NCBI RefSeq assembly: GCF_963921235.1
Contig: NC_086101.1
Location: 15,934,001 to 15,998,000, forward strand
DNA length: 64,000 bases
Source of the DNA: Mobula hypostoma
Taxonomy: Eukaryota
Direction of reading: 5' to 3'
Part shown: positions 21,294 to 46,433 of the stretch, one piece after another
How the letters are laid out: each line of letters starts with the position of its first letter
How positions within the stretch are numbered: the first letter of the stretch is position 1
Translations under genes and position numbers: made by a program
Notes under the pieces: generated by a model
What the model was told of the DNA's origin: nothing
Seen by the model: the letters and a program-made list of their open reading frames with translations, nothing else
Databases searched by the model: none

Positions 21294-21359
21294 CTGATAA
21301 TGAACTCTCCTCAGCAGAGGGTCAGTTTGCGGATGGCGATCCATCTCCCTGCTTCCCTG
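21294..21359 (-). CDS. Cytoplasmic exon 4: [22 protein letters not shown] (phase 0-0; NAGNAG acceptor gives 66 or 63 nt)
   Basis: ctattcag/cag acceptor, CAG|gtaacg donor, 99-nt upstream intron. Confidence 0.75.
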
Positions 21360-27300: not shown

Positions 27301-30300
27301 TGAGGAATGGAAAAAGAGAGGGGAGAGAAGCTGAGAGAAACCAATGTTAATGCCACCAGGTTGGAGGCTACCTACATGGAATATGAGGTGTTGCTCCTCC
27401 ATCCTAAGTTTGACCTCATTGTGGTGGTAGAGGAAGCCATGGACAGTCATGTCAGAATGGGAATAGGAAGTCAAATCGAAATGAGTGCGCTTGTTCTCAG
27501 TTCCACCCAGGAGGGAAAGGTGGCTTCAGAATGCACTGGTTTCCCACTTAGCACTCATAACCGAGTCAGTTGTATGGACAAATCATATGGATACTTGCTT
27601 CCATTGGGCAACGCAGGGAGTATAAAAGATAATGATACGGCTTTATAAGGAATTGGTTAGGTCACAGCTGGAGGACTGTACACAATTCAGGTACCACGCT
27701 GAAGGAAGGATGTGATTGCACTGGAGAGGGTGCAAAGACAATTTACAAGGATGTGACCCACTGCCACTCACATAGAGATAATTGTTCTTAGTATCTTCAT
27801 TCTTGTTTATGTTATTTTTATTTAGGGACACAGGGCAGTAACAGACCCTTCCAGCCCAACGAGACTGCTCTGTGCAGTTACACCCATGTCACCAATTAAC
27901 CTGACAACTTGTATGTCTTTAGGATGTGGAGGGAACTGCTGCACCCAATGGAAACCTACGCATTCACGGGGAGAACACACAAATTCCTTAGAGTCAGTGG
28001 AAGGAATTGTGCCACCCCTTTGCTGGCACTGTAACAGTGTTACAGGAACCACAATGTCACCGCGCCACCCCACTATTCTACCTTCACTGTCCCTGATGAG
28101 CATTTCTTTTTGCACTACGATGCATTGCACTGCTCTCCTTGCACCAGTCTGTTGTCTTGTCCTCATGGCTGTATTTGATGTTGTATTTAATATTACCACG
28201 TACACCAGTGAGCTTCAAACAGGGAAAGGATTTCATCGCATCTTGGAGCGGTTGACAATAAATTTATCCAGCCTAGTCATCAGAGAAAGCTGCAGAATTG
28301 GGCACAATTACAATTAGAGGCCAGCTGACTGGGCCTTGTGCCTCTTGATCGCACTGATGTTCAATACTGGGACCCACCAACTCGAGACAGTCCGGTATTC
28401 ACGGGTGTCCTTCGTGTAAATTTTCACCCACATTACTAACCTTTGTGCACAGAGGAGAGGCCTAAACTCTGAATGTACTTCATCGCCATGACAGTATCAC
28501 TGGATTTCAAGCACGGAGCAGAGTCCTGGACTCGGAGTGCACCTTCTCAACTATCCACATCACTGGGTGCAGAGTGGAGTGCTGACCTCTACCTCCTTCA
28601 TGTCCCTGTCTATGTCCATACACCCTAATCTGACCCCTAACTCCATTCACTGTCCTGAAAACCATTCCTACAAACTTAAAAGCACAACAAAGTCTGGGCC
28701 ATGATCTCAAGAGATACCACAGCTCGCACCATTATGACCAAAGATTTATGGGCCATCTCAGTCAGCAGAGATGAGTTGGGCTGAAGGGCCTGTGTCTGTG
28801 CTGATGACTCACAGATCTACTACCTCAATTGCCCCACTTATCTGCACATGCTGGTGAACCCCTTGGGCTTTCCAGATGTTCCTCTCCTTTAAGGATATAA
28901 GGCATTGGTCAAAGAACATTGGCAGTGTTGTGTGCAGTTTTGGGCTTCATATCTAAGAAACAATGTGCAGGTGTTGGAGAGGATCCAGAGGAGAATGACA
29001 AAACAGATCTGGGAATGAAAGAGTTAACGTATGAGGATTGCAGACTCTGAGCCGTACTTGCTGGAGTTTAGAAGAATGGTGGGGAGGGATCTTACTGACA
29101 TCTATCAAATACTGAAAGGCCTAAACAGAGTGTATGTGGAGAGAATATTTCCAATATTGAGAGAGTCTTGGACCTGAGGGCACTGCTCAGAATAGGATAT
29201 AAGGAGGAGTTTCATTACCCAGAAGATTCATTACCACAGATGAATGTGGAGGCCAAATGATTGGGTATATTTAAAACAGAAGGTGATAGGTTGAGTATTG
29301 GTTTCTAAGGTTATGGAGGAAGGCAGGAGAATGGTGTTGAGACGGAAAAAAATCCCTCAATGTGGAATGATGGAGTAAATTCGTTGGGCCAAATGGCCAA
29401 ATCCTTATATGTCTGATGATCCTAAACTGGCCATAGAGGTAAAGAATTCAGTCTCTTTACTTTCCGCTCTGCGTAGTTTTCGAAGAAACAGGATGCTGAC
29501 GAGCAGGATGCTCCCTTGTATTCCAAAGACCGTTAACAGGATCACCAGGACAATCGTGACAGGTTTCATTTTGCCTGTGGGAGAGAAAACAACTCAGAAC
29601 ACACGAGCACATATGGGCCATTTGGCCCTTCGAGACTGGTGAAGCACACAATGATATGGCAGCTGACCTGAAAGTGATTAACCCCAGTGGTGAGATCGTT
29701 CCTGTCCCTGCCACACCCCCTCCTCACTATTCCAGGGCAGGAAGCACAGGGAAGTTGCTCTTCCAATAATTGTATAGGATGACCAAAAGGTGATAAAGTC
29801 ATATCAAACGTTGATCTTCGTCTAACATTAATAAGTCCTACACTAATCCCATTTACATTTTCCTATTAATTTTACTGATAACTGATCCTCTCCACCTTCT
29901 CTTCAAATCCATCCAACTTTTTCCACTTGGCAACACACTGGGGGCAACTTACAGCAATCAATTAAACCACTGACCCACACATCCTTGGGGTGTGGGAGAA
30001 AACACCAACAACCGGAGGTGGGGGTTGGCCACACCATCACAGGAAGAATGCATTGAGAATAGGATAGGACAGTGTGTAACCCACTACCCCACCGGGTCCC
30101 AGAGGGGGATAGGACAGTGTGTGACCCACTGCCCCTCCGGGTCCCAGAGTGGGGTTCGACAGAGTATAACCCACTGCCCCAGCAAGTCCCAGAGGGGGAA
30201 GAGGGTAGTGTGTGACTGACTGCTTCACCTCGACCAAGAGGGGCAGAGAACATCTTGTAACTCACTGCCCCACCCAGTACCAGAGGGAAGAGGACAGTGT

Positions 30301-33300
30301 GTGACCCACTGCCGTACTGGGTACCAGTGTGAGGGAGGATCGTGTGTGACCCATTGCCACTGTTCTATAATCTGCACACTGAGCCAATCATTGTTTACGG
30401 GTTGATAAGTGTGTGATCTCTAGCCAGTCACCCCAATGTAATTCTTGTTATCTTTAGTCTCCCATCTACATTCAACGATGGTCAGCCAGTCCTGTTGGTG
30501 ATGACACTGGAAGTGAAGGCAGGAAACCAGACAGGGCTCATGAATAGAAAGTTGATGGGGGAGGGTGTGTGTTAGTGGGTGGTAATAAGCTCAGTATTGT
30601 CTGGGCTGGGGAACCACTCACGTGTGTGACTGACTGTCAGCCATACTCCTTCTCCGATTTCCTCGCCAATCCCGTCTATCCGTACTTTGCAGTGGTACAT
30701 TGCGGTATCACACTCCTTCACATCCATCCGCTTCATGGAAGCTTTGAAGGAATCCTCCTGGTCAGGCCCAAGGACGCGCCCTGCATACTCTGCCGTCCCG
30801 TTGGAGGCTTCAGATGCTTTGCTGTACCAGCTGTAGAACACAATGTCTCCGGAGTGATTGGCATTTGACCTACAGATCATGAGGTCCGTTTCACCCTCAC
30901 GTACAAATATACTGGACTGGCCTTGCGTAACCGTGAAGCTCTTGCTTTTTCCTGAAATGGGAAAGGAGAAAGTAAATGCTTCCCGTTTGGAAGTTGGCCA
31001 TTGGGGTGGGAATTAAGGCCCAGTGTTAAAGACTGGAAACATTCAACATTTGAGATTGTTTGTTGTCAATCGTCAGTACAATAGTTTAAAGGAAGATGAA
31101 ATCATTGTTTCTCCAGTTCTGATGCAGCATTAAAAAGAGACAATAAGCATAAAAACAAAAAACTATAGTGTATAAATATACACCCATCCTGTAAAATGTG
31201 TGGCGCGTGGCCAAGTGGTTAGGGCGTTGGGTTCACGATCTGAAGGTCGTGGGTTCGAGTTTCGGTCAAGGCAGCGTGTTGTGTCTTTCAGCAAGGCACA
31301 TTACCACATACTGCTCCAGTCCACCCCCAGCTGAAAATGGGTACTGGCAAAATACTGGGGGTTAACCTCACGATAGACTGGCGTCCAATCCGCAGGGTAG
31401 TCAGGTACTCTCAGTCGCTTCACGCCGCTGAAACTGGCATAAGCACCGGCCCGCTGGGCAACAAAGGCTCAGACTTTAACTTTTAACTGATCCTATAAAA
31501 CACAATGTACAAGTAACTGTAAAGTGACAGTGCATGGGAAGGGTGCTGAGGGCTGTGGAGAGGAGTGGCTGATGTGGATGTAGTGGTGGTGGGGTGGGTT
31601 AATGGTGGAGGTGTTGATCAACCTGATAACATTGGTTGAAGTATCTGATTTTGATTCTGATCTTTGATGGTGGATAGGCCAATACCGAGGTTGTGTTCTG
31701 CATTTTGAAGGACACATATGACAAGCTGTTCATTGGCTTGTCATATGAAGAGTGTTTGATGGCTCTGGGTCTGGGTCTGTATTCGCTGGAATTCAGAACA
31801 AGGGGTGACCTCATTGAAGCCTATCAAACAGTGAAAGGCCTTGAAAGAGTGGATATGGGGAGGATGTTCCTATGGAGGACGAGTCTAAGACCGGAGGACA
31901 CAGCCTCAGAATAGAGGGGTGTCCTTTAGGAAGGAGATGAGGAGCAGTTTCTTTAGCCATTGAGTGGTTAATCTCTGGAATTTCTTGCCACAGACAGCTG
32001 TGGAGGCCAAGTGTTCATGTATACTTGAGACAGAGGTTCTTGATTGGTCAGGACATGAAGAGACACAGAGAGAAGGCAAGTGATTGGGGTTGAGAGGAGA
32101 ATGGATCAGACATGATGAAATAACGGAACAGACTCTTCCAAATCAGGCCAAATGGCCTAATTCTACACCTATATCTTATGGTGTTATTTAACTACCTGCT
32201 GTAGAGTCGTCCTATCCATCACTGTGAGTTTCTGTACCACACAGCGATCCAGCATGTTAGGATGCTCTCTAATGTGCATCCAAACATGTTCCATAACCTG
32301 GGCTTCTAAACGTCCCTCTGCAACTCTATTCTTGCCATCCTCACTGGGAGACCAGAGTCTGTGCGGGTTGGAAATAATATCACCACCTCGCTGACAATCA
32401 ACACTGGTGTACCTCAAGGATGCATGCTTGGCCCACTGCTCTACTATCTCTACACTGGCAATTGTGTGGCTAGGCACAGCTCAACTGCCATTTATAAATT
32501 GGCTGTCATCATAATTATTGTTGGTAAAATTTTAGATGGTGATGAGGAGGTGTACAGGAGTGAGAAAGACCAGCTGGTTGAGTGGTGTTGCAACAACAAA
32601 CTTGAATTTAATATCAATAAGACCAATAAATTGATTGTGTACTTCATGAAGGGGAAGTCAAGGGAACACACCCCAGTCCTCATCAGAAGTGGAAAGGGTG
32701 AGCGGTTTCAAGTTCGTGGGTGTCACCATCCCTGTGGATCTATCCTGGCCCCAGGATATTGATCCAATGACACAGAAGGTACAACATATTCAATATTGTA
32801 TTCGGACTCTGGAGATTTGGTACGTCATCAAAGATACCTGCAGATTTGTAGATTTCTACAGATGTGCTAACTGTTTGCATTACTGCCTGACATTGAGCGG
32901 CCTCTGCACAGGACTGGAAAAAGTTGCATAAAATAGAGATTTCAGTGAGAGACAATCAGTCTCTCTCTGAGATGCATGGAATATCTTCCCCTATCTGGGA
33001 GTATTATTCTGGGGGGCGGTCCAGTCTCAACAAAGGAGCTGGCTATTTGGGATAGATGGGTCCATGGGCTGGAGAGCCTTAGGATGGTTATAGAAGCTGA
33101 GCTGCAGAGTATGTTCAAGCAGAGTTTGACAGATTCTGCCTTCCGTCACTGTGATTTTGGAACCAGAGTTTTCCCATACTAATGGAGAACACAGCAGATG
33201 ATGGAGGAACTCAGTGGGTCGGGCAGCAGCTATGGCAGGAGAAATTTCCAGTCGTCTGGACTGGAAGACTGAAGAGAATTGGCCAGAAACAGAAAGGTAA

Positions 33301-36300
33301 TGGGGAAGGGGTAGAGCAAGTGCAGGTGGATCCAAGTGAGGAGGAGGTGATAGGCAGAAGGGGGAAGGAAGGTGGAGGTAGCCATGGAGGCTGGGAGGTG
33401 GTAGGTAGCTGTGACAAAGTACTGCAGATGTTGGAGTTTTAGAACTCAGGTCTCAGCATTTCATTATTGTGCAGTTTGTCGTCTTTTGTTTGTAGGGATA
33501 ACGGAGTAGATCAGGAGGAGGGGAAAAGGGTCAGAGGGGGAGCAGTTTACAGTAAGTTGAAGAATTCAAAGTTCACACTGTCAGCTTGTGGACAGCCCAG
33601 GGGGAAGTGGAAAATGACGTTCCTCTAGCTTGCGTTTGAGCTGACCCTGACTGAGGAGACTGAGGATAGATGTGTTGGTATGGAGATTGGGCGGGGGGTG
33701 GAGTGGAAATGAAATGGGTAGCAACTGAGAATGGGGAACATCATCCATACTAGCTCGAGTGAGCTTGTGTCAGTCACCATGGAAGCAACAACTTGCCCAA
33801 ATATCCTGCCAGCATCCTTCAAGGAGAGAAATGGATGATCTCAAACCGGGAATTTACCACTCAACTCTTCGAGGCCCCTCTGAACGTAGCTGCCCCAGTT
33901 CAAGACCCAAGGAGGGGGATAGACTCGCCCCACATGGTAGGTAATCTGGCAGACTTGAGAAAGGGTAAAATGAGGAAACACGAGCCAATCCATATGCAGG
34001 GATCAGAAGTGGAGAGAGTGAGCAATGTCAAGTTCCTGGCTGTCTGGGGATCTAACCTGGCCGCAACATATTGATGCAGTGATAAAGGAGGCAAGACAGC
34101 AACTGTATTTTATTACGAATTTAAGGGGATCTGTTTTGTTACCTAAAACACTTGAAAACTTCTACAGATGTACCATGGGGAGCATTTTGACAGGCTGCAT
34201 CAAGTCTGGTATGGGTAGGGGGTGGGGAGGTGTGCTACTGCACAGCATCAGAAGAAGCTACAGATATCTGTAAAATTAGTCAGCTCCATCTTGGGTACCA
34301 GCCTCCGCAGTATCTAAGACATCTTCAAGCAGTGGTGCCTCCGAAAGGTGGCGTCCATCATTAAGGACCCCCATCACCCAAGACATGCCCTCTTCTCATT
34401 GTTACCATCGGGAAGGAGGTACAGAAGCCTGAAGGCTCACACACTCAGCGGTTCAGGAACAGCTTCTTCCCTCTGCCGTCTGATTTCTCAATGGATTTTG
34501 AACCCATGAACACTACCTTATATTTTTTAAAATTATTTCTGTTTTTGCACGATTTTTAAATTAAGTATTTAATATACATTTATACTTACTGTAATTGATC
34601 TGCTTATCTATTACTTTTTCTACATTATCATGTATTGCATTGTATTGCAGCTTAAGTAAACAAATTTCACAACATATGCCGGTGATATTAAACCCGATTC
34701 TGTTACTGATTCCGTTTCTGCTTCGGATCCTGCCATCAGTCAGAGTTGGCATTGGGGGTAGAAACTTTGGAAGAATGAGGTGGTAAAACTTGAGCAGAAA
34801 TATTTTAACAAAGAGTGTGATTGGGCTATGGACCGGACAGTTCAGTAGTTACTATTTCAAATACATTTGACAGTACTGTACAGGAACGGGCCCTTCAGTA
34901 AACAATGTTGTGCCAAACTAATTGGTGACCAAATGTCCAATTAAACTAACCCTTCCCAACATAATGTCCGTATCCCTCATTTCCTGCACATCCATGTGCC
35001 TGTTTAAGAGCCTGTTGAATGCCTGATTGTATCTGTCTGTGAAAAACACTTGCCCACACTTCTCCTTTGAATATATCCCCTCTCACTTAAAATTCATGCC
35101 CTCTGGAATCGGACATTTTTCCCCTGTGACAATGATATCAATTGTATGCTCTGTCTGTCTCTAATAAGCTATAAACCTCTATCAGGTCAAAGGCATCGGC
35201 GGCAGTGGAAGGCAGGCAGTGCACCACCAAACGTGATGAGTTCCTTCTCCTTGTGTGGGGATTTTTCTTATTTTTAAACCGTAAAAGAGAGATCAGATCC
35301 AGCGGAGTGGCCATCTTTGAACAAGAAGCGGCTGAGGCCAATGAAACAGGTAGCAAGGGGAGTTTTTTTTCCCTTTCGTTATTGCTGATTTGGTCTTGGC
35401 TGCCCATAGTACAGTGCAGGCAGGATGGCAGATGTGGCAGTGGAATGCTGCTCTTTCAGGATGTGGCAATTCATGGAACCTGATCGTCTCCCTGATGTCT
35501 ACAACTGTGGGAGGTGCAGCCAACTCCAGCTCATGAAAGACTACATGATGGAGCTGGAGCAACACACATCAAGGTTGCTGGTGAACGTAGCAGGCCAGGC
35601 AGCATCTCTAGGAGGAAGTACAGTTGACGTTTCGGGCTGAGACCCTACGTCAGGACTAACTGAAAGAAGAACTACTAAGAGATTTGAAAGTGGGAGGGGG
35701 AGGAGGAGATCCAAAATGACAGGAGAAGACAGGAGGGGGAGGGATGGAGCCAACAGCTGGACAGGTGATTGGCAAAAGAGATATGAGAGGATCATGGGAC
35801 AGGAGGCCTAGGGAGAAAGAAGCGGGCGGGGGGGAACCAGAGGATGGGCAAGGGATATAGTGAGAGGGACAGAGGGAGAAAAAGGAGAGAGAGAGAAAGA
35901 ATGTGTGTATATAAATAAATAACGGATGAGGTATGAGGGGGAGGTGGGGCATTAGCGGAAGTTTGAGAAGTCAATGTTCATGCCATCAGGTTGGAGGCTA
36001 CCCAGACGGAATATAAGGTGTCGTTCCTCCAACCTGAGTGTGGCTTCATCTTTACAGTAGAGGAGGCCGTGGATAGACATATCAGAACAGGAATGGGATG
36101 TGGAATTAAAATGTGTGGCCACTGGGAGATCCTGCTTTCTCTGGCGGGCAGAGCGTAGGTGTTCAGTGAAATGATCTCACAGTCTGCGTCGGGTCTCACC
36201 AATATATAAAAGGCCACATCAGGAGCACCGGACGCAGTATATCACCCCAGCTGACTCACAGGTGAAGTGTTGCCTCACCTGGAAGGACTGTCTGGGGCCC

Positions 36301-39300
36301 TGAATGGTGGTAAGGGAGGAAGTGTAAGGGCATGTGTAGCACTAGTTCCGCTTACAAGGATAAGTGCCAGGAGGGAGATCGGTGGGGAGGGATGGGGGGG
36401 ACCAATGGACAAGGGAGTCGCGTTGGGAGCGATCCCTGTGGAAAGCAGAGAGAGCGGGAGAGGAAAAGATGTGCTTAGTGGTGGTGGGATCCCGTTGGAG
36501 GTGGCGGAAGTTACGGAGAATAATATGCTGGACCCAGAGGCTGGTGGGGTGGTAGGTGAGGACAAGGGGAACCCTATTCCTAGTGGGGTGGCGGGAAGAT
36601 GGAGTGAGAGCAGATGTGCGTGAAATGGGGGAGATGCGTTTGAGAGCAGAGTTGATGGTGGAGGAAGGGAAGCCCCTTTCTTAAAAAAAAAGGAGGACAT
36701 CTCCCTCGTCCCACCACTAAACACATAGTTAAGAAGGAAAGAAAAGTTTATGAGAGGTTCAAGAAACTTGGTACTGTTCGAGCTCTAGAAAATTACAAGG
36801 TTGCTAGGAAGGAGCTTAAGAATGAAACTAGGAGAGCTAGAAGGAGCCACGAGAAGGCCTTAGTAAGAAGGATTAAGGAAAACCCCAAGGCAGTTTACAA
36901 GTATGTGAAGAGCAAGGGGATGAGCCATGTGGGAATAGGACCAATCAGGTACAAAAGTGAAAACATGTGCATGGTGTCGGAGGCAGAAGCAGAGGTACTT
37001 AATGAAAACTTTGCTTCAGTATTCACCAGAGGAAAGAAACTTGGCAATTGTAGGGATGACGTACAGCAGACTGAACCACTTGAGCATATAGACCCTAAGG
37101 AAAAGGATGTGCTGGAGATTTTGAAAAGTATTAAGTTAGATATGTCTCTGGGACCAGACGAAATACACTCCAGGCTACTGTGGACAGTAAGGGAGAAGAT
37201 TGCTGAGCCTCTGTTGATGATCTTTGCATCACTAATATGGATTAGTGAAGCACTAGAGGATGAGAGGGTTGCAAATGTTGTTCCCCTGTTCAAGAAAAGG
37301 AGTAAAGATAACACAGGAAATTATAGACCAGTGACTCTAACTTCAGTGGTGGGCAGGTTGTTGGAGAAGATTCTGAGAGGCAGGATTTATGAGCATTTGG
37401 AGAGGCATAACCTGATTAGGGATAGTCAGCATGGCTTTGTCAAGGGCAGGTCATGCCTTACAAGCCTGATTGAATTCTTTGTGGATGTAACAAAATACAT
37501 CGATGATCGAAGAGTAGTGGATGCACTGCATATGGATTTCAGTAAGGCAGTTGATAAGGTTTCCCATGCAAGGCTCTTTCAGAAATTAAGACAACCTGGG
37601 ATCCAGGGAGACTTTGCATTGTGGATTCAGAATTGGCTTGCCTAGAGAAGGTAAGGGGTGTAGATGGTTTGTATTCTACATGGAGGTCAATGATGCAGTG
37701 TTCTGCAGGGATCTGTTCTGGGACCCTCTCCTCTTTGAGAGTTTTATAAATGACCTGAATTAGGAAGTAGAAATGTAATTTTGTACGTTTGCTTTTGACA
37801 CAAAAGCTGAAGGTGTTGTGAATAGTCTGGAGGGTTGTCAGAAATTACAACGGGACATTGATAGGATACAGAACTGGCTGAGAAATGGCAGATGGATTTC
37901 AACTGAGATAAGTGTGAAGTGGTTCATTTTGGTAGGTCAACTTTGAAGACAGAATATGAAATTAATGGTAAGACTCTTGGCAGTATGCCGAATCACAGAG
38001 ATCGAAAGGACACTCAAAGCTGCTGCGCAGGTTAACGGTGTTGTTAAGAAGGTGTATGGTGTGATGGTCTTCAACAACCATGGATTGAGTTCAAGAGTGT
38101 GAGGTAATGTTGCAACTGCAGTATTAGACATTGGGCAGTCCCCACTTGGGATTCTGTGCTCAGTTCAGGAAGGATGTGGATAACATACAGAGTGTGCAGA
38201 GGAGATTTACAAGGATGTTGCCTGGATTGTAGAGTGTACCTTATGAGAATAGGTGAGTGAATGTGGCCTTTTCTGCCTGGAGGGATGAAGGATGAGACCT
38301 GACCTGACAGAGGGGTATAAGATGATGAGAGGCTTTGATCGTGTGGATAGTCAGAGGCGTTTTCCCAGGACTGAAGTGGCTATCATGAGAGGGCACAGTT
38401 TTAAGGTGCTTGGAAGTAGGTAATGGGGGTTGTGAGAGGTAAGTTTTTCACACAGAGAGTGGTGAATGTGTGGCACGCACTGCCAGTGATGGTAGTAAAA
38501 ACAGATAAGGGACTCTTAGATACAGGGAGCTTAGAAAATAGAGGGCTATGTGGTAGGGAAATTCTAGGCAGTTTCTAGAATAGGTTACATGGTCGGCACA
38601 ACATTGTAGACTGAAGGGCCTGTAAAGTGCTGTAGGGTCTATGTTCTATGGTCTAGGTCTCTGATCAGTTTCTGCCTCTCCAGGGAAAACAGCACACGTT
38701 CGGCCTTGACCAGCCATGACCAGATTCTGTTTGTGTGGTGTGTCTGATTCGCACTTACAAGGAGATACTTGAAGGCTGACTTACCTCTCACTGTGAGATT
38801 CGTCCCCGCCCCACATATTTCCCATTCCTTAGTCTCTAACTTGCAGAAGTACATCGCAGAATCACTCAGCCGCACGTGCTTCAGTTGCAGGGAGACATCT
38901 GTGCTGTTAGTGGAGGGATCATCCCCTTGAGGTCTCAAGAAGCGGCCTCTGTACTCTGCTGTTTCATTGGTCACTTCTGTTCCATTTCTGGCACCCTTGA
39001 CCCAGTGGTGCGACCATATCTTACTCGTGGAATTGTGTCTGCATGGAATAACCACCGTCTCCCCTTCTGTGGCAACGATGCTGGACTTGTCCTGAATGAC
39101 CACAAACTTCTCAGCACCAATGCCTGAAAGCAGGGAGCAAACTTTAAAATGGGTAAATTGGTTTATTATGGTCACATGTATTGAGGTACAGTGAAAAGCT
39201 ACGTTTTGTCTGCCATCCATACAGATCATTTTATCACATCAATTCAATCAGTTCGTGCAAAGGAGGAACAATAGCAGAATGGGTAATAAAGTGTTACAGT

Positions 39301-42300
39301 TACAGGGAAAGTGCAATGCAGGCAGAGAATAACATACAAGGTTGATTGTGTTGTATTTTAATGCACACAGCATAGGTAATAAAATGGACGATCTTGAAAT
39401 TCAGCGACAGATCAGCAAATATGATGTTATGGCCATCTCTGAAACTTGGCTAAAGGATGGCTGCCATTGGGAGCTTAACTTCCAAGAATGTATGGTATAT
39501 TGGAAAGATAGGTTAGTAGGCAGAGGGGGTGATGTGGCTCTGTGTATAAGAAATAATATTAAGTCATTAGAAAGAGATGACACAGAATTGCAAGGTGTAC
39601 AGTCTCTATGGGTTGAGTTAAGAAACGGCAAGGGTAAAAGGACCATAATGTCAGTTGTATACAGGCCTCCAAAAACAGCACCCGGGATGTGGATTACAAA
39701 TTACAGCAGAAGATACAAAAGATGTGTCAAAAGGGCAATGTTATGATAATCTTTCTTTCTTTAGTAATCTTTTTATAGATTTAAAAGGAGCAAAAATACA
39801 ATCAAGTGGCGAATTATCTCAAATATATATATCAGTAGCAGTCCAACTGAGATTAAGGTAGACATTTTCAAATTTATCGATATTGTTAAACAAGTATAAA
39901 ATATATAATAAAAAAATGAAAATAGCAATTCTCCTCTTATCAGTTTATGAAGAGAAAAGAAAAAAAAATTGAGTTTTAAATGAAGAGAAAAAAAATCCCA
40001 CTACACTATGTTAAAAAAAACAAAAAAAAGCGACTGGGCAGTCCATTTTGAGGATACGACCAAAAAAAAAAAGAAAGAAAGACTTTCTGATCAAATCTAA
40101 AATTTTGAAAAAATATTGAAAGAGTAATCAATCAAATTAAATGAAAACATTGGATAAAAGGTCCCCAGATTTGCTCAAGTTTAAAGGATGTATCAAATGT
40201 CCGATTTCTTATTTTCTCTAAACTTAAACAGGACATAATGGAGGAGAGCCAATAAAAGACTGTCGGTGGATTAGAATCCTGCCACTTCAATAAAATGATT
40301 CTCCAAGTCAGTAAGGTTTGAAAAGGCTATCATACGTTGAGCGTAAACAGGAATACTTCCTGCTTCCAGTGGGATAATCCCCAAAACTTGCCGTTAGCAA
40401 ATGAGGTTGTAAATCCAGATCCAAAACTTTTGATAGCATTTTAAAAACATCTCTCCAAAAGTTATCTAGCTTGATACAAGACCAATACATATGAGTTACA
40501 GTGGGCAGCTCAGTATTACATCTGTCACAAATAGGATTGATATTGGAGAAAATATGCACATTTATCCTTTGACATATGGGCCTGATGCACCACTTTGAGC
40601 TCTATCAAGGAATGTCGGGCACCAATAGATGAGTTATTAACCAAATGAAAAGTTTTACTCCGTTGATTATCTGAAAATGACTCTTGAAATTCCGATTCCC
40701 AAGCGCATTTAATTTTATCAATAGATGTCATTCGTGAGTTCAATAACGGTTTATAGATTATATCAACCCTTTTTGAAATGGTTTAAACTGAAAGAGAGCA
40801 TTTGTCATATGAAGTGGATAAGCAACAAATATGGCAACAAACCATGTAAAAAGTTCCTAATTTGTAAATATCTAAAAAAGTGTACATCAGATAAATCATA
40901 TTTATCCACGAACTGAGAAAAAGACCTTAAACAGTCCTCTAAAAACAAATCTGAAAAAGTTATTATTCCCTTGGTTTCCAAATTTAAAAAAGCCTTATCC
41001 AAAATTGATAGTTTAAAAATATTGAGATGGATATTACCAGAAAGGATAAAATTATTTAACTCAAAAATCTACGAAACTGAAAGCAAATTCTTAACGTATG
41101 TTTATTAATGGGATTAAAATCTTGTCTACTAATCTTAGAAAACAAAAAGGGAAGAGGAGCTCCCAGTAAAGAGGTCAAAGAGAATCCTTTCACAGAGTTT
41201 TCCTCCAAATCCAACCATGAAGGACATTAATGTGTACCTGAATAGTGAATCCAAAAAGTAATATACCGAATATTAATTGCCCTAAAGTTAATTCTAAAAT
41301 TTGGCAAAACTATACCACCATCCTTTTTTAATTTCTGCAAACAGGGTTTACTCAATCTAGGATTTTTATTTTATAGGGTTCCGTTAGTCTCATGAGACAA
41401 TCGATTTGCGCCTTGGAAAGTTTCCAGGGTGCAGGCCTGGGCAAGGTTGTATGGAAGACCTGCAGTTGCTCATGCTGCAAGCATTCCCTCTCCACGGAAC
41501 CGATGTTGTCCAAGGGAAGGGCATTGGGACCCATACAGCTTGGCACCTGTGTCGTCGCAGAGCAAAATGTGTTTAAGTGCCTTGCTCAAGGATACAACAT
41601 GTTGCCTCAGCCAGTGCTCGACCTAGCGACCTTCAGATAACTAGACGAACGCCTTAACCACTTGGCCATCCTAAAAACTAGGATTTTTATTGTTCCCAAT
41701 ATAAGATAAGGTTATAGAATCTATTCTATCAAAAAACTTTTTAGGAACAAAGGAAGGAACTGCTTGAAATATATATATAAGAGTTTCGGTAAAACTATCA
41801 TTTTATTATCATTAATTCGAACTATTAATCATAATGTCATAGGAGACCATTTAGAAAGATTTGTTTGGTGTAGTCAATTAATGGAAAAATATATTTATAG
41901 AGATCCTCAAAATTTTAGTAATTTTAATACAAAGATAGATAAATTAATTTTTAGCAATACTAAATGGTACTTGATGATTTGGATACGAGTAATTATAAAT
42001 AGGAAGTAACTCACCTTTATGTAAATCTAATTTATACTCAGTAAAACAACTGAATTCAGAAAATATAGATAACATAGAAGGAACAGATTTCCTAGGATCT
42101 GAAATATAAACTAACAGGACATCTGCATATAAAGAAACCTTGTGTATTTTGTCCACTCTTTTAATACCCTGAACAGTGTTAGAATCTCTAAGAGCAATAG
42201 CAAGGGGTTCTAAAGCCAAGTTAAATAATAAAGGGCTAAGACAACATCTCCGCTGTGTATCTCTGTATAATCTAAAATAGGGAGAACTTTTTTATTATTA

Positions 42301-45300
42301 GTTATAACCGCAGCTATAGGAGCATAATAGATCAAATTAATCCAGGAAATAAATCCCGGGCCAAGATGACATCTTTCCAAAGCCTCAAATAAGTAAGACC
42401 ACTCCACCCTATCAAGGGCTGTCTCCGCATCAAGAGAAGCAACACATTCAAATTCTTTCGATGGAGAAGAATGAATAATATTTAATAATCTTCGACTGTT
42501 AAAACGGCAGCCGAGGATATTAAACCCGATTCAGATAGTGATGTCGTTTCCGGTTCTGATCCTGCCATCAGCCGGAGTTGGCATTGGGGGTAGAAACTTT
42601 GAAAGAATGAGGTGGTAAAACGTGAGCAGAAATATTTTAACAAAGGGTGTGATTGGGCTATGGACTGGATAATTCAGCAATTGCTATTTTAAAAACATTA
42701 GACAATACCGTACAGTAACGGGCCCTTCGGTAAACAATGTTGTGACAAACTAATTGGTGACCAGATGTCCAATTAGACTAACCCTTCCCAACATAATGTC
42801 CGTATCCCTGATTTCCTGCACATCCATGTGCCTGTTTAAGAGTCTGTTCAATGCCCTATTGTATCTGCCTCTACCTCGACCACCACCAGTGCATTCCAGG
42901 TACCCGCCATTCTCCGTGTAAAACAATTGCCCACACATCTTTGAATAGACCCCCTCTCACTATAAATGCATTCACTCTGGTATTAGACACTTTTCCCTGT
43001 GAAAATGATATCAACTGTCTGCTCTGTCCGTGTCTCTTATAAATTATAAACCTCTACCAGGTCTCTGCTCAGCTTCTGCTGCTCCAGAGAAAACAACCCT
43101 CATTCGTCCAACCTTCCCTTATAGCACCTGCCCTCTAATCCAGACGGACTGCAGGTAAACCTCTTCTGCACCTTTTCCAAAACCTCACCCTGTTTTTATA
43201 ACGGGGTGAACAGAACTGAATGCAATACCAGATGCAAACTAAATAATTATGTAAAGCTGCAATGCAACTTCCCAACTCTTGAACTGATTTCTTTGAGTAA
43301 TTATGGAAAATAAGCCGTAAGTCTTCTTTTCCATCCTATTAACGTATCTGGCCCCCTTCAAGGGAGCTTTGGACTTGGACTCCAAGAGATCCTTCTGCTC
43401 ATTTGTATTGTTAAGGGACTTGCCACTAACAGCGTACTCGGTGTATACATTTGAATAATATTACTGTTCAAGAGCAAACAGGGAGGTATTTGACTGGGAA
43501 GTGTTTGCCAGGCTCTGGAGAGAAGCTGAAGCATGTAATTGTTGGTGCATGGACTCAGTACAGACAGAATGGGCCGAGTGTCCCCTTTTGAAAGGTCAAC
43601 TCTCAATCTCCCTCCCTATATTCTGCCTGAAATACGAGTTCCTCCAGCATTGTGTTTCGTTCATTCCAGGTTTCAGCATCTGCAGCCTCTTTGGAATTGG
43701 TATTAGTTTATTATTGTCCCATAATCTGAGGTACAGTGAAAAACTTGTCTTGCATACTGTTCATTCAGATCAGATCATTACATGGCGCACGGTGAGGTAG
43801 TACTGTACTCGGTAAATCAATAGCAGAGTAATGTGTAACAGTGACAGAGAAAGTGCAGTGTAGGGAGACAATGTCATAACGAGGTAAATTATGAGGTCCA
43901 GAGCCCATCTGATCATACCTGGGAACCAGGTAATAGTCTGATAACAGTGGGATAGAAGCTGTCCTTGCGCCTGGTAGTTTGTGGTTTCAGGCTTTTGTAT
44001 CTTCTGCCCGGGGGAGAGGGGAGAGGAGAGAATGTCCTGGGTGGGTGGGGTCCTTCATTATGTTGGAAGCTTTACTGAGGCAGCAAGAAATCAGAAGACA
44101 GAGTCCTTGGAGGGAAGGTTTGATTTGTTAGTACTCACCCCCTCTCCCACATTTTCTGTTCTGGAACGATTTTATCATTATCCAGTTGGTGAAATTCTAA
44201 TAATGAAAATTTAAAACCTGCAGATGCGGGAAATCTGTGGTAAAAAAAAACTAGATATGCTGGAAACGCTCAGCAGGTCAGGTAGCATCTGTGGGAAGTG
44301 AAACAGAGTTAATGCTTGAAGGGGAAGATCTTTCCTCAGCACTGGGCAAAAATTGTTTACAAGATATTTCTTTCTTCTTGTTTACCCTCCTTCTCTTCCC
44401 TGAGGATTGGTCACAGATCTGAACATTTTGCTGCTTCTCTCCCCACAGTAGCTGACTGACCTGCTAAGTGACTCCAGCATTTTCCAGCCTTGACCAAATT
44501 CTGTTCGGGTGGTGGGTCTGATTTGCTTAGACAAGGAGATACTTGATGATTAGCTTACCTCTCACTGCGAGATTCGTCCCTGCCCCACACATTTTCCATT
44601 TTATTGCCTCCAACTTGCAGAAGTACATCCCAGAATCACTCGGCCGCACGTCCTTCAGTTGCATAGAAACATCTATGCTGTTAGTGGAGGGATCACCCCC
44701 TTGAGGTTTGAAGAAGCGGCCTCTGTACTCTGCTGTTTGATTGGTCACTTCTATTCCATTTTGGGCACCTTTGAACCAACGGTATGACCATACCTTATTC
44801 GTGACATTGTGTCTGCATGGAATAACCACCGTCTCCCCTTCTGTGGCAACAATGCTGGACTTGTCCTGAATGACCACAAACTTCTCAGCACCAATGCCTG
44901 AAAGCAGGGAGCAAACTTTAAAAATTGGTAAATTGGTTTACTGTGGTCACATTTTGTTCTTCATACATATCATTTTATCACATCGATCCAATGAGTTAGT
45001 GTAAAGGAGGAACAATAACAGAATGGGGAATGAAGTGTTACAGTTACCGAGAAAGTGCGGATCGGAGCCTGGAAAAGAGGAACCTAGGAGTACGAGTGCA
45101 CAGCTCATTGAAAGCGGCAGACAGGTAGTGAAGACAATGTTCAGTACGCTGAGCTTCAGTCAGAGCTTTGCGGACAGGAGTCCAGAAGTTATGTTACTGT
45201 TGTACAAGTCGTTGGTGAGGCTGCATTTGGAATATTTTGTACAGAATTGGCCACCCTGTTGCAGATGTTATTAATTAGAAAGCGCGCAGATATGGTTTAC

Positions 45301-46433
45301 CTGGATGTCGTCAGAATTTGGGGGCCCGAGTTACAAGGAGAGGTTGCATAGACTAGTACTTTATTCTCTGGAATGTAGGAGATTGAGGGGGTCACCTGAT
45401 AGGGATATGAAACACAATAAAGGGCATAGATATTCTGAAAGCAGCATTTTACACCGGTGGGGGGGGGGGGAGGGTGTTGTTAACAACAAGAGAGCATGGG
45501 TTTAAGAATAGATGAGAGAGTTTTGAAAGGGATATTAGACAATTTCTTCACACAAAATTGGTGGTGTTACGTGGCTGAAATGAGCTGACAGAAATGGCGG
45601 TGGCGGCGAGTAAACTACAAATATCTTAAAGCCTTGTAGATGAGTACATGGGTCGGAGGGATTTTAGGGAGCTGTGGGCCAAACGCGGGCAGATGGGACG
45701 AGTTCGCTGGTTAACACGATCGACAAGGACGAGTTGGGCCGAAGGGCCTGTTTCGGGGCTAGGAGTCCACAATCACGGAGGCTAAAATTGTACAGAATAT
45801 CCCAAGTGCGGCCTCACGGTCACTGGTACATCTGTAACAAAACCTCCCAATTCCCACACTCAAGAGATTCTGCACATGCGGGAAATCCAGAGTAACAGGA
45901 CGAACTCGGGAGGTCAGGCAGCAGTTGTGGAGGGGAATAACCAGTTGACGTTCCGGGCTGAGACCCTTCATCATGATTGGAAAAGAAAGAGGGAGAAACG
46001 AGAAGTCTGCGTCCTCAGTGTTCGACCTGGAATTCAGCCCCCCCCCCCCCCCCCCCCCCGTCGGCTAGTCAGGGGGTCGATGCCGGAAGCCTGGAGACTA
46101 GAAGCCCGAACGTTGTTCTCGGAATTGGTGGACTGTCCGTGTGTGCGCGTGGGAGGGAGGAAAGGGGCTTGTTTTGTTGCGTTTTGTTGTGCTTTATGTT
46201 GTTCTGCCGACATTGTGGACATTAATGTTGGCGCCGGAATGTGTGGCGACCCTCGCGGGCTGCCCACAGTGCCTCCGTAGGTGTGTTGGTTGTGAACGCA
46301 AATGAAGCAGACGAACCTTCCCGCTTTTCCCGCGCTGCCCATTGCCTTCTCCCCCAAGCTGTAGCTGTAAAGGAACAGAAAGCTACTTACCGGAGGAGAC
46401 GGTCAGGAGCCACAGAATGGCGCCCACCTCCAT
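21294..46433 (-). CDS. NCR3: NKp30/NCR3-family receptor gene model: leader, V1, V2, V3, TM and four cytoplasmic exons (444 codons; 3' end unresolved)
   Basis: Nine exons with GT-AG sites and matching phases (43+339+339+330+114+19+38+44+66 = 1332 nt, no stop). V domains share NKp30 hallmarks: V.Q...I...EG....C, E..N.T.EY.GR, D...Y.C and a germline G-x-G J-like strand. The symbol marks family membership, not proven orthology. Confidence 0.8.
21459..21502 (-). CDS. Cytoplasmic exon 3: [15 protein letters not shown] (44 nt, phase 1-0)
   Basis: ttttccttctttag acceptor and AAT|gtgagt donor. Confidence 0.8.
21550..23050 (-). mobile_element. Decayed CR1 RT and 3' UTR
   Basis: [23 protein letters not shown] and [10 protein letters not shown] (22638-22898). 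Confidence 0.85.
23230..23990 (-). mobile_element. Penelope-like 3' fragment
   Basis: Same GIY-YIG and pLTR sequence as 6590-7430, more decayed. Confidence 0.8.
24700..25050 (-). mobile_element. Rex-Babar-like 3' fragment
   Basis: Reverse complement of the element type at 33940-34500 (atcattaaggatccccaccatccag). Confidence 0.55.
25460..26480 (-). mobile_element. CR1 3' fragments
   Basis: [14 protein letters not shown] and the 3' UTR shared with 14640-14900. Confidence 0.75.
26680..26717 (-). CDS. Cytoplasmic exon 2: [13 protein letters not shown] (38 nt, phase 2-1)
   Basis: ctttttctcttcag acceptor and CGG|gtaagt donor. Stop-free in phase 2, which the 19-nt exon upstream supplies. Confidence 0.8.
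26815..26833 (-). CDS. Cytoplasmic micro-exon 1: NSLRVQ (19 nt, phase 1-2)
   Basis: tctttcttctctccttcccttcacag acceptor and AAG|gtgagt donor; 97-nt intron to the next exon. Confidence 0.8.
26880..27480 (-). mobile_element. Penelope-like 3' fragment
   Basis: [35 protein letters not shown] plus pLTR. Confidence 0.85.
27830..28070 (-). mobile_element. Probable SINE
   Basis: Similar ~240-bp units at 46870-47080 and 50400-50560. Confidence 0.45.
28260..28740 (+). mobile_element. Highly decayed Rex-Babar/L2-like RT fragment
   Basis: actgatgttcaatactgggacccaccaa aligns with the LxTGxPQG region of 32380-32420. Confidence 0.4.
28885..29430 (+). mobile_element. CR1 3' fragment
   Basis: Decayed YKALV...CVQFW...LE.IQRR motifs and 3' UTR. 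Confidence 0.7.
29461..29574 (-). CDS. Transmembrane exon: [38 protein letters not shown] (114 nt, phase 1-1)
   Basis: gttttctctcccacag acceptor and GAAA|gtaaag donor; about 26 hydrophobic residues followed by the basic stop-transfer RKLRR. Absent from the ORF track in this frame. Confidence 0.88.
30060..30360. repeat. 45-bp tandem repeat, about 6-7 diverging copies
   Basis: gagggggataggacagtgtgtgacccactgcccctccgggtccca units in the V3-TM intron. Confidence 0.85.
30622..30951 (-). CDS. NCR3: Ig VJ-type exon V3 (membrane-proximal; most NKp30-like)
   Basis: 330 nt, phase 1-1, ttctcctttcccatttcag acceptor and CAC|gtgagt donor. [60 protein letters not shown]...[29 protein letters not shown]. 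Confidence 0.9.
31203..31480 (+). mobile_element. tRNA-derived SINE
   Basis: Head ggcgcgtggccaagtggttag (A box) ... ggttcgagt (B box); no complete cloverleaf; related copies elsewhere in the window. Confidence 0.8.
31700..32170 (+). mobile_element. CR1 3' fragment
   Basis: [29 protein letters not shown]. Confidence 0.8.
32230..32990 (+). mobile_element. Rex-Babar/L2-like RT fragment
   Basis: [22 protein letters not shown]...[17 protein letters not shown]. Confidence 0.8.
33170..33620 (-). mobile_element. Decayed Penelope pLTR fragment
   Basis: ggaggaactcagtgggtcgggcagca terminal motif. Confidence 0.6.
33940..34690 (+). mobile_element. Rex-Babar-like 3' end with UTR
   Basis: [10 protein letters not shown]...[21 protein letters not shown]...ENFYRCT. 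Confidence 0.8.
34686..35185 (+). repeat. Local duplicate block B (paralogous to 42515-43060)
   Basis: Colinear match gatattaaacccgattc...ttggcattgggggtagaaacttt...ataaacctcta; lies in the intron 3' of V2. Confidence 0.85.
35567..36715 (-). mobile_element. Penelope-like element (RT C-terminus, GIY-YIG, pLTR)
   Basis: Reverse-complement match to 7560-8640. Confidence 0.9.
36720..38650 (+). mobile_element. CR1 ORF2 RT and 3' UTR
   Basis: ORF 36905-37645 [12 protein letters not shown]...[19 protein letters not shown]; (ttctatg)n-like tail at about 38635-38650. Confidence 0.92.
38785..39123 (-). CDS. NCR3: Ig VJ-type exon V2
   Basis: 339 nt, phase 1-1, ctccctgctttcag acceptor and GAG|gtaagt donor. 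[63 protein letters not shown]...[26 protein letters not shown]. Confidence 0.92.
39335..39735 (+). mobile_element. CR1 endonuclease fragment
   Basis: [16 protein letters not shown]...ISETWL...VVYRPP. Confidence 0.85.
39735..42500 (-). mobile_element. L1/Tx1-like LINE, 5'-truncated ORF2 and 3' end
   Basis: [11 protein letters not shown]...[15 protein letters not shown] (RT) and PICDRC...THMYWSC (C-terminal CCHC); AT-rich. Confidence 0.85.
41375..41670 (-). mobile_element. tRNA-derived SINE inserted in the L1-like element
   Basis: Matches 1700-1880 and 6035-6190; tRNA-like head at about 41640-41670. Confidence 0.75.
42515..43060 (+). repeat. Local duplicate block A (paralogous to 34686-35185)
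   Basis: Colinear match to block B; lies in the intron 3' of V1. Confidence 0.85.
44559..44897 (-). CDS. NCR3: Ig VJ-type exon V1 (membrane-distal)
   Basis: 339 nt, phase 1-1, ctccctgctttcag acceptor and GAG|gtaagc donor. [63 protein letters not shown]...[26 protein letters not shown]. Confidence 0.92.
45130..45760 (+). mobile_element. CR1 3' fragment
   Basis: [19 protein letters not shown]; [21 protein letters not shown]. Confidence 0.8.
46038..46059. repeat. C22 homopolymer (G22 on the sense strand of intron 1)
   Basis: Direct count. Confidence 0.9.
46391..46433 (-). CDS. Leader (signal peptide) exon [15 protein letters not shown]
   Basis: gcaacgATGG start, hydrophobic core, phase-1 donor CCG|gtaagt. 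Splicing to GIGA of V1 gives a plausible cleavage after G-I-G-A. Confidence 0.88.

Follow-up and report, generated by a model that had tools for sequence, protein, structure and literature searches.

Our results suggest, with a probability of roughly 0.58, that this 64-kb stretch of Mobula hypostoma DNA (hereafter the window) contains a receptor gene of an NKp30/SIRP-like multi-V cluster, in which the membrane-distal V exon was duplicated long ago and whose product would likely consist of a leader, the V domains V1, V2 and V3, a transmembrane (TM) segment and a tail (Table 1). The distal V exon was duplicated in tandem, taking along about 190 bp of intron on its upstream side and a portion of the intron that follows it, and the copies have diverged into two recognisable domain types. 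In the scenario that we favour, the product would string V1 and V2 in series, giving two different distal V domains per chain. With a serial product, the gain in recognition surface would be additive, instead of depending on one exon chosen per transcript. We infer that this gene is expressed and that both exons are included in its transcripts.

Table 1. Exons, duplicated intron blocks and transposon remnants of the gene, in window positions.
Feature	Position	Strand	Description
Leader exon, coding part	46391..46433	minus	14 residues + first base of a Gly codon
Intron flank upstream of V1	44898..45058	minus	homologous to 39124-39314, upstream of V2
V1 exon	44559..44897	minus	339 nt, phase 1-1, V-set, "V1 type" (WFKGA...EAIKWKM)
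Intron block downstream of V1	42510..43063	minus	homologous to 34678-35188
Transposon-filled spacer	39315..42509	.	end of duplication copy 1 to start of copy 2; contig depth
Exo_endo_phos (endonuclease) fragment	39342-39743		between the V copies; Pfam
V2 exon	38785..39123	minus	339 nt, phase 1-1, V-set, "V2 type" (WVKGA...TKEWEI)
LINE reverse-transcriptase fragment	36905..37642	plus	V2-V3 intron; Pfam RVT_1, E=2.5e-13
Intron block downstream of V2	34678..35188	minus	partner of 42510-43063
V3 exon	30622..30951	minus	330 nt, phase 1-1, different V-set type (KSKSFTV...)
Transmembrane exon	29461..29574	minus	37 residues; tblastn to TM of P0002, P0153, P0154
Span of three cytoplasmic-tail exons	21459..26722	minus	tblastn to P0153 and P0002 tails; splice sites read directly
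Tail exon	about 26722-26685	minus	12 residues
Tail exon	about 25430-25390	minus	14 residues
Tail exon	21502-21459	minus	14 residues

The duplication itself is documented by two pairs of intron blocks recovered with blastn, one of 83.7% identity between 44484-45058 and 38710-39314, the other of 80.5% over 558 columns downstream of V1 and V2. The upstream flanks align over 160 bases with 19 mismatches and 2 indels, and the downstream blocks over 507 bases with 58 mismatches and 4 indels; the block downstream of V1 is mostly single-copy judging from DNA contig depth, while the depth of the spacer between the copies ranges from hundreds to about 1e5. Blastn retrieved no second copy of the leader region within the 64-kb window, whose sole leader lies upstream of both V1 and V2 and has a phase 1 donor (G/gtaagt). 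The preliminary description of this stretch, in which a V exon and its downstream intron had been duplicated in tandem without the leader, is borne out by these blocks for the exon and part of that intron. It had also proposed independent transposon insertions, and these are indeed seen, as the reverse-transcriptase fragment is restricted to the V2-V3 intron, blastn giving no equivalent on the downstream side of V1, and the endonuclease fragment lies between the copies.

Both V exons are recognised as V-set domains by Pfam (E=6.6e-11 for V1 and 2.2e-12 for V2), and in each of them the first two bases finish a split codon and one extra base is left at the end, so that the frame is kept when both are included. 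Since the leader ends in G, either exon yields the Gly-Ile-Gly-Ala junction that had been noticed previously. The last 24 intron bases before the two acceptors are identical, the donor AGAG/gtaag is common to both, and all sites are GT-AG, including those of the 5.4-kb intron that separates V1 from V2. The exons differ by 35 nucleotides and 23 amino acids (79% identity), the latter number being the same as that counted earlier, and the first 30 full codons are identical save one silent change, close to the 31 identical residues reported. A Nei-Gojobori count gave 25 replacement and 10 silent changes, compared with the earlier hand count of about 26 and 9-10. All the countable claims of the preliminary description were reproduced. 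In addition, a DNA contig from the same species spans the V1 region (44545-44923) with one base different.

The remainder of the gene also resembles its relatives. The leader is 100% identical to those of P0002 and P0154 over 14-15 aa (tblastn), and a leader of this sequence followed by an IGAEKF-type V domain is a feature of the elasmobranch cluster (LOC134346461/462 and relatives), as is a KSKSF-type proximal V domain followed by an uncharged TM segment; both are present here. V3 is only about 38% identical to V1 and V2 (Pfam V-set, E=5.2e-07) and is placed with the membrane-proximal domains (clade support 100/100), but its terminal branch is long, 0.21 compared with 0.06 or less in relatives. 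The TM exon is 71-84% identical to those of relatives and its 27-residue span has no charged residues. It is located 1 kb from V3, with no C1-set exon between them, all three ectodomain exons being V-set. At least four tail exons were found, reaching down to about 8.8 kb in the window, and the leader, the three V exons, the TM exon and these tail exons all have open frames and consensus splice sites. The join between TM and tail was not found: the TM exon ends in phase 1, the next tail exon needs phase 2, and a motif search did not retrieve the micro-exon implied by the relatives (..NSLQVQ..). A tblastn match at 14379-14326, apparently the relic of an ITIM exon with a stop codon, was discarded as the sequence is transposon-like. 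Each of V1, V2 and V3 contains an additional cysteine not found in the relatives.

In the domain tree, V1 and V2 branch in separate clades, each with domains of other Mobula genes. V1 groups with the first domains of P0002, P0153 and P0156, and V2 with the second domains of P0156 and P0153 and the first domain of P0001 (support 98/97); V1 is 96% identical to the first domain of P0002 and V2 95% identical to the second domain of P0156. Forcing V1 and V2 as sisters costs 64 lnL units and is rejected (p-AU 3.4e-5). Across all eight Mobula domains, 13 of 112 positions separate the two types (8 fixed and 5 disjoint), and each type persists as an open domain in four Mobula genes. The introns of the two copies have diverged by 0.124, and DNA contigs from a second Mobula-like organism diverge by about 3% on unique intron pieces. 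From these comparisons, the duplication is to be regarded as old, preceding both the multiplication of the cluster's genes and the split between M. hypostoma and M. birostris. Whether a stingray V-V pair derives from the same duplication was not decided either way by the AU tests (p=0.26 and p=0.22).

The annotated relatives place the two domain types in series. The M. hypostoma paralogue P0153 (an XP_ record, LOC134346461, 467 aa) reads ...NLAVRG/IGAEKF...TYLTVRA/KSKSF..., followed by the TM segment and tail, and P0156 (M. birostris, partial) and P0155 (Hemitrygon akajei, 534 aa) likewise present V1-type, V2-type and V3 domains in this order. All three are RefSeq models, in which the V1-V2 junction may be a computed one that no transcript backs. 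P0153 has the same leader, three V types, uncharged TM segment and tail with EFQPE(D/E)..LICPPMQM as the window gene, its two distal domains belong to the same two clades as V1 and V2 here, and it shares a chromosome-sized contig with the other cluster genes; its annotation is "uncharacterized protein". Nevertheless, it is a paralogue, differing at 9 of 112 positions in V1, 18 of 112 in V2 and about 24% in V3, with Tyr at position 103 of both domains where the window gene has Cys. P0156, annotated as [quoted passage not shown] (263 aa), is the closest to V2, from which it differs at 6 positions, and its V3 begins in the same diverged way as that of the window gene (FVREGETD, within a stretch of 22 residues), in a sequence annotated as coding; it is probably the orthologue of the window gene, although it ends inside V3, has Tyr103 in both domains and differs by 9 residues in V1. 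The two options offered previously for V1 and V2 were stacking and use as interchangeable cassettes, and our analysis favours the former as the best reading, given the order in these three models.

The use of V1 and V2 as alternative cassettes, giving leader-V1-V3 or leader-V2-V3 products besides or instead of the serial one, appears distinctly unlikely. In its favour, either phase 1-1 exon completes the split leader codon in the same way, and in P0002 (V1-type) and P0001 (V2-type) the distal domain directly follows the leader and precedes V3-type domains, so both leader junctions are structurally tolerated. By the strand map of the structural model, the type-specific residues would lie in the C strand, FG hairpin and G strand, the face that NKp30 and SIRPalpha use for their ligands. 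However, nothing enforces exclusivity: joint inclusion keeps the frame, the length of the V1-V2 intron excludes steric hindrance, the splice sites are ordinary GT-AG, and the paralogue and M. birostris models include both exons. In addition, the three annotated isoforms of the horn shark gene (n=3) all retain the three V domains, their sequences diverging only beyond residue 350. The splice-level diversity suggested in the preliminary description is therefore without support. Tandem, homologous and phase-compatible Ig exons behind shared upstream exons are also known in the Dscam exon clusters and FGFR2 IIIb/IIIc, systems that have mechanisms forbidding joint inclusion. In contrast, no frame shift, steric block or incompatible splice-site classes that would bar V1 and V2 from joint inclusion are visible in the sequence here, and the relatives are modelled with both exons. 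A slightly less credible idea still is the combinatorial use of V1, V2 or both, which would allow one gene to make receptors with different ligand faces, or a disulfide formed by the parallel Tyr-to-Cys replacements at the same G-strand position of V1 and V2 and locking domains or chains, which would imply that V1 and V2 are co-expressed and form a new quaternary arrangement for an NKp30/SIRP-like receptor. The complex prediction for a V1:V2 pairing scored 0.07, against a mark of 0.34, and gives no evidence either way.

The differences between V1 and V2 had been described as focused on CDR-equivalent loops and, in this respect, the enrichment was confirmed but not its interpretation as selection-driven replacement. 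Residues 28-39 and 94-103 (the BC and FG segments, 22 residues) hold 10 of the 23 amino acid differences (Fisher p=0.003), and, of the nucleotide differences, the initial 92 nt contain a single one and the other 247 nt contain 34 (p=2e-4). The overall dN/dS is 0.68, not different from 1 (p=0.39), and it falls to 0.41 in these two segments because silent changes are concentrated there too (4.5 of 10 within 22 of 112 codons); positive selection on the loops is rejected on the present data. The exon divergence (0.103) is not significantly below that of the introns (p=0.36), and no indels separate the exons where 2.7 would be expected (P=0.064). The absence of replacements in codons 1-30, where 8.6 would be expected at the intron rate (P=2e-4), argues that both copies have been kept under protein constraint. 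It is very improbable that one exon, most likely V2, is a skipped and drifting pseudo-exon with the function carried by the other. Aggregate dN (0.10) is close to the intron divergence (0.12-0.14), as if one copy were unconstrained, and V2-type domains vary more among paralogues (6-20 differences vs 5-12 in V1-type). Nevertheless, a model with one drifting copy predicts 4.3 replacements in codons 1-30, none of which is seen (P=0.013); the splice signals are identical, both frames are open, each type is open in four Mobula genes and has a clade of its own, and eight type-specific residues are fixed within each type.

It is also unlikely, though less so than the preceding alternatives, that the gene has fallen silent or is decaying within a birth-and-death receptor cluster, with frames left open by the slow mutation of elasmobranchs and neither V exon used. 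Indeed, a search of 5.8 billion proteins found none identical to the exons of this gene, and this copy seems to have no RefSeq protein model, whereas three neighbouring paralogues on the same chromosome do. A query with the V2 exon retrieved no short protein fragments spanning exon junctions (62-196 aa range), and no RNA contig of this very gene was found for the region 38950-44940, the returned contigs being mostly transposon. The contigs that cover V1 or V2 in runs guessed to be RNA are only 90-96% identical and are probably from paralogues. One of them, a 224-nt contig from run X2, whose assignment to RNA is a guess, aligns at 96% identity with the initial 174 nt of V2 and departs from the genome exactly at the V2 acceptor, with 46 further bases upstream; it looks like a spliced transcript of a paralogue of the P0001 or P0153 type, uninformative on this gene. 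The long V3 branch, the unpaired cysteines, the missing TM-to-tail join and a dN/dS not different from 1 would also suit decay, and the chance of both copies remaining stop-free under neutrality is about 0.2, which means that open frames by themselves show little. Against decay, however, stand the series of open exons with consensus splice sites, from the leader to at least four tail exons, the absence of replacements in the first 30 codons of both copies, and the closest M. birostris model, which shares the diverged V3 start and is annotated as coding. Moreover, the runs guessed to be RNA are tiny (about 0.14 Gb) and their tissue is not given.

The gene is one more, apparently unannotated, member of a family of V-domain receptors that do not rearrange; in sharks and rays this family expands through whole V-exon duplication, and the two V types are kept side by side in several of its genes and in at least two species. 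Here, exon duplication appears to have led to stable multi-domain receptors with differentiated domains rather than to an engine of diversity based on picking one exon, a tidy case of subfunctionalising domains for V-domain diversification without RAG rearrangement, which opens no new question. It is a modest variant, as the V1-V2 series is already present in the public annotation of related genes and no new diversity mechanism is involved. Full-text literature searches found no description of multi-V NKp30/SIRP-like receptors in rays.

Regarding known families, the AlphaFold model of the V domain (pLDDT 83) is nearest to SIRPalpha D1 and NKp30, with TM-scores of 0.78-0.80. The gene shares with NKp30/NCR3 the single-exon V-set domain, the J-like G-x-G-T-x-L-x-V end and the (E/A)(F/Y)RGR motif (phmmer E=4e-8; Foldseek TM-score 0.78, rmsd 2.7 A), but its three V domains, uncharged TM span and long multi-exon tail set it apart from NKp30, which carries a single V domain, a short tail and a charged residue in the TM segment. 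SIRPalpha is the best match of the V domain in both sequence (E=1e-8) and fold (TM-score 0.80), and the SIRP family shares the uncharged TM span and long-tail layout; however, SIRPs are V-C1-C1 and the window gene has no C1-set exon. Therefore, the V domain, of the non-rearranging VJ type, fits SIRPalpha as well as or better than NKp30, and the two families are not told apart. UrIg/UrIg2 belong to a different, V-C1 family. Within the cluster, P0001 ("polymeric immunoglobulin receptor-like", five V domains, 602 aa) has the same leader, V types and tandem phase 1-1 duplication read in series, but there the proximal V3-type exon was amplified recently and its copies are nearly identical, whereas in the window gene the distal exon was duplicated once, long ago.

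The receptor gene lies on the minus strand of the window, which contains no N, and its two duplicate V-set exons, V1 and V2, share the same 24 nt in their acceptor region (...ttaaagtttgctccctgctttcag/GC, the slash marking the exon boundary) and the donor AGAG/gtaag. Both are in phase 1-1, with two initial bases completing a split codon and one extra base at the end, and each encodes 112 residues matching the Pfam V-set profile (E=6.6e-11 for V1, 2.2e-12 for V2). The domain is a non-rearranging VJ-type V-set domain. The preliminary description had proposed that a V exon was duplicated without its leader; this duplication is real and was correctly described, as the exons, the counts and the homologous intron blocks were all reproduced, and by blastn the leader region occurs only once in the window. 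Between the two exons there are 35 base differences in 339 and 23 residue differences in 112. Their reportedly identical start holds, with a single, silent change in codons 1-30, and the estimate of ~26 replacement to 9-10 silent changes becomes 25 to 10 by Nei-Gojobori counting.

Features of the receptor gene and its surroundings
Feature	Position	Strand	Length	Description
Leader exon	46433 (ATG) to 46391	minus		14 residues and first base of a Gly codon, ...TCC G/gtaagt
V1 exon	44897-44559	minus	339 nt	
V2 exon	39123-38785	minus	339 nt	
V3 exon	30951-30622	minus		V-set, phase 1-1, different type, ~38% identical to V1 and V2
TM exon	29574-29461	minus		uncharged transmembrane span, downstream of V3
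Tail exons	near 26.7, 25.4, 21.5, 8.8 kb	minus		recognised by similarity to relatives
Codon 103 (TGT), V1; V2	44587-44589; 38813-38815			
Homologous intron blocks (blastn)	44484-45058 and 38710-39314			
Homologous intron blocks (blastn)	42510-43063 and 34678-35188			
Reverse-transcriptase fragment	36905-37642			
Endonuclease fragment	39342-39743			
Repeat with characteristic 3' end	39142-39350			..ttttcactgtacctcaatacatgtgac..
Second copy of this repeat	43689-43893			68% similar
Very high-copy element	41350-41750			
Tandem-repeat open frames	50700-51900	minus		..GRGNPGLGEV.., ..GTRNRDLVLEHR..
Open stretch	21294-21359			ends ..RRVHYQ/gt

The intron blocks are 1.4 kb apart on the V1 side versus 3.5 kb on the V2 side because the reverse-transcriptase fragment is present only downstream of V2, bearing out the independent transposon insertions noted previously. 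Transposon sequence, with an endonuclease fragment and a contig depth of up to ~1e5, fills the 3.2 kb that separate the two duplication units. The repeat with a characteristic 3' end lies directly upstream of V2, is partly deleted upstream of V1 and has its second copy in the intron downstream of V1; unequal exchange between such copies could have duplicated the V exon. The very high-copy element, with a depth of ~1e5 in DNA runs and ~1e4 in runs that may be RNA, is probably a SINE-like repeat. Upstream of the leader, the long open frames of degenerate tandem repeats are probably satellite or low-complexity repeats, not coding sequence.

The family was gathered by a phmmer search with V1 (1.8 billion representatives), by name look-ups and by a second search with P0002, a M. 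hypostoma paralogue.

Relatives of the window gene and their V-domain order (types are named after the window's V1, V2 and V3; L, leader; TM, transmembrane)
Protein	Species	Length	Domain order
P0153 (LOC134346461)	M. hypostoma	467 aa	L-V1type-V2type-V3type-TM-tail
P0156	M. birostris	263 aa, partial	L-V1type-V2type-V3 start
P0155	Hemitrygon akajei	534 aa	L-V-V-V3type-TM
P0002 (LOC134346462)	M. hypostoma	419 aa	L-V1type-V3type-TM-long tyrosine-motif tail
P0001 ('polymeric immunoglobulin receptor-like')	M. hypostoma	602 aa	L-V2type, then four V3type domains
P0154	Hypanus sabinus	426 aa	two V domains
Horn-shark proteins	Heterodontus francisci		three V domains
Catshark proteins	Scyliorhinus canicula		two V domains

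Sequence comparisons indicate that the exon duplication is old. In a maximum-likelihood tree of 36 single domains, the window V1 groups with the first domains of P0002, P0153 and P0156, and the window V2 forms a clade with the second domains of P0156 and P0153 and the first domain of P0001 (support 98/97). A topology with the window V1 and V2 as sisters was rejected (delta lnL 64, p-AU 3.4e-5), and the stingray V-V pair may stem either from the same duplication or from another (p-AU 0.26 and 0.22). Across the eight Mobula domains compared, the V1 and V2 types each have their own fixed residue at positions 41, 48, 67, 85, 89, 98, 102 and 110, and disjoint residue sets at positions 39, 62, 82, 97 and 99; therefore, 13 of the 23 differences between V1 and V2 are old and type-defining, the rest being lineage-specific. 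DNA contigs of a second organism differ from single-copy intron pieces by ~3% (74/2215 bases), compared with 12.4% between the duplication copies, a gap that fits a duplication several times as old as the species divergence, if the contigs are orthologous.

The differences between V1 and V2 are unevenly spread, with one in the first 92 nt and 34 in the remaining 247 (p=2e-4). The preliminary description had read them as focused on the CDR-equivalent loops, and residues 28-39 and 94-103 indeed hold 10 of the 23 residue changes (p=0.003, for a partition picked post hoc). The clustering thus stands, but its selective reading does not, because silent changes cluster in the same segments (4.5 of 10 within 22 codons), where omega is 0.41. 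Regional rate differences would fit this clustering as well, and so would a mosaic history with gene conversion among many paralogous exons. Over the whole exon, dN=0.102, dS=0.150 and omega=0.68, which does not differ from 1 (p=0.39), and the divergence between copies is 0.124 in the intron (742 aligned bases) versus 0.103 in the exon, a non-significant difference. Codons 1-30 indicate protein constraint on both V1 and V2, having no replacement where the intron rate would predict 8.6 (P=2e-4), or 4.3 under drift in one copy only (P=0.013). That the exon has neither indels (P=0.064, with 2.7 expected) nor stop codons (P about 0.2) lends weak support to constraint on both copies.

The best reading of the gene's sequence would be a serial V1-V2-V3 receptor as the preferred product, with two differentiated distal V domains set in series on a third. 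Such a receptor would continue with an uncharged transmembrane span and then a tail bearing tyrosine motifs. The three-V architecture is already in public annotation, in a M. hypostoma paralogue and a M. birostris relative. The proposal that V1 and V2 act as interchangeable cassettes giving splice-level diversity is not supported by the evidence at hand. These two models carry their three V domains in series; nothing in the sequence would either prevent or enforce occasional skipping of V1 or V2. The three horn-shark isoforms all have the same three V domains, diverging only past residue 350. A 224-nt contig from run X2 matches V2 at 96% identity over its 5' part (38950-39124); the match ends exactly at the V2 acceptor and is followed by 46 nt more, consistent with a spliced transcript in which a paralogous V2-type exon is joined to a leader or V1-type exon.

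The gene could also be silent or decaying. No protein identical to the window exons was found among the family members returned, a short-fragment search was also empty, and this copy seems to lack a RefSeq protein model; P0001, P0002 and P0153 are carried by one 199-Mb contig. Likewise, contigs from runs guessed to be RNA include none of exactly the window gene. V3 has an end branch of 0.21, versus at most 0.06 for all other membrane-proximal domains; the partial M. birostris model has the same diverged first 22 residues, and therefore the V3 divergence seems to have arisen before the two species separated. The phase-1 end of the TM exon does not fit the tail exon recognised next, which requires two bases from upstream (29461-26722). 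Relatives carry ~8 extra residues (..NSLQVQ..) between TM and tail, implying a micro-exon, which a motif search did not find; a transcript reading past the TM exon donor would instead encode a short tail followed by a stop. From the lack of a protein model and of an RNA contig, the long V3 branch and the phase gap, we therefore retain a modest probability, perhaps one chance in several, that the gene is silent or decaying. Further along the tail, exon 21502-21459 ends in phase 2, and the open stretch downstream of it would be out of frame if directly joined.

For the V domain of the serial receptor, SIRPalpha D1 (E=1e-8) is the closest solved relative by sequence, with NKp30 also close (E=4e-8), and both are also the closest by fold (TM-score 0.78-0.80) to an AlphaFold model built from a 35-domain alignment (pLDDT 83). 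In the strand map of this model, the type-specific residues 39 and 41 fall at the end of the BC loop and in the C strand, 82, 85 and 89 in the E-F turn, and 97-102 and 110 in the F-G hairpin and G strand. This region presumably corresponds to the ligand-facing side in the NKp30-B7-H6 and SIRPalpha-CD47 complexes, and the type-specific residues would thus lie roughly on that side. In addition, an extra N-G-T sequon at 46-48 is kept in V2-type domains and absent from V1-type ones. Unlike the adaptor-coupled layout of NKp30, that of the window gene, with its uncharged span and tyrosine-motif tail, would be inhibitory or mixed.

Both V1 and V2 have a cysteine at residue 103, directly preceding the G-x-G bulge, a position held by Tyr in all nine related domains. 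V1 and V2 differ on either side of it, in the third bases of codons 102 and 105, limiting any gene-conversion tract at Cys103 to ~8 nt, and parallel acquisition at homologous sites by chance is unlikely. If the two residues pair, such parallel change would be expected; Cys103-Cys103 pairing of V1 and V2 is a lead only. A same-species DNA contig spans V1 with one unplaced mismatch. V3 has an extra cysteine of its own (KEC, near 30710), at a position occupied by Ser in relatives.
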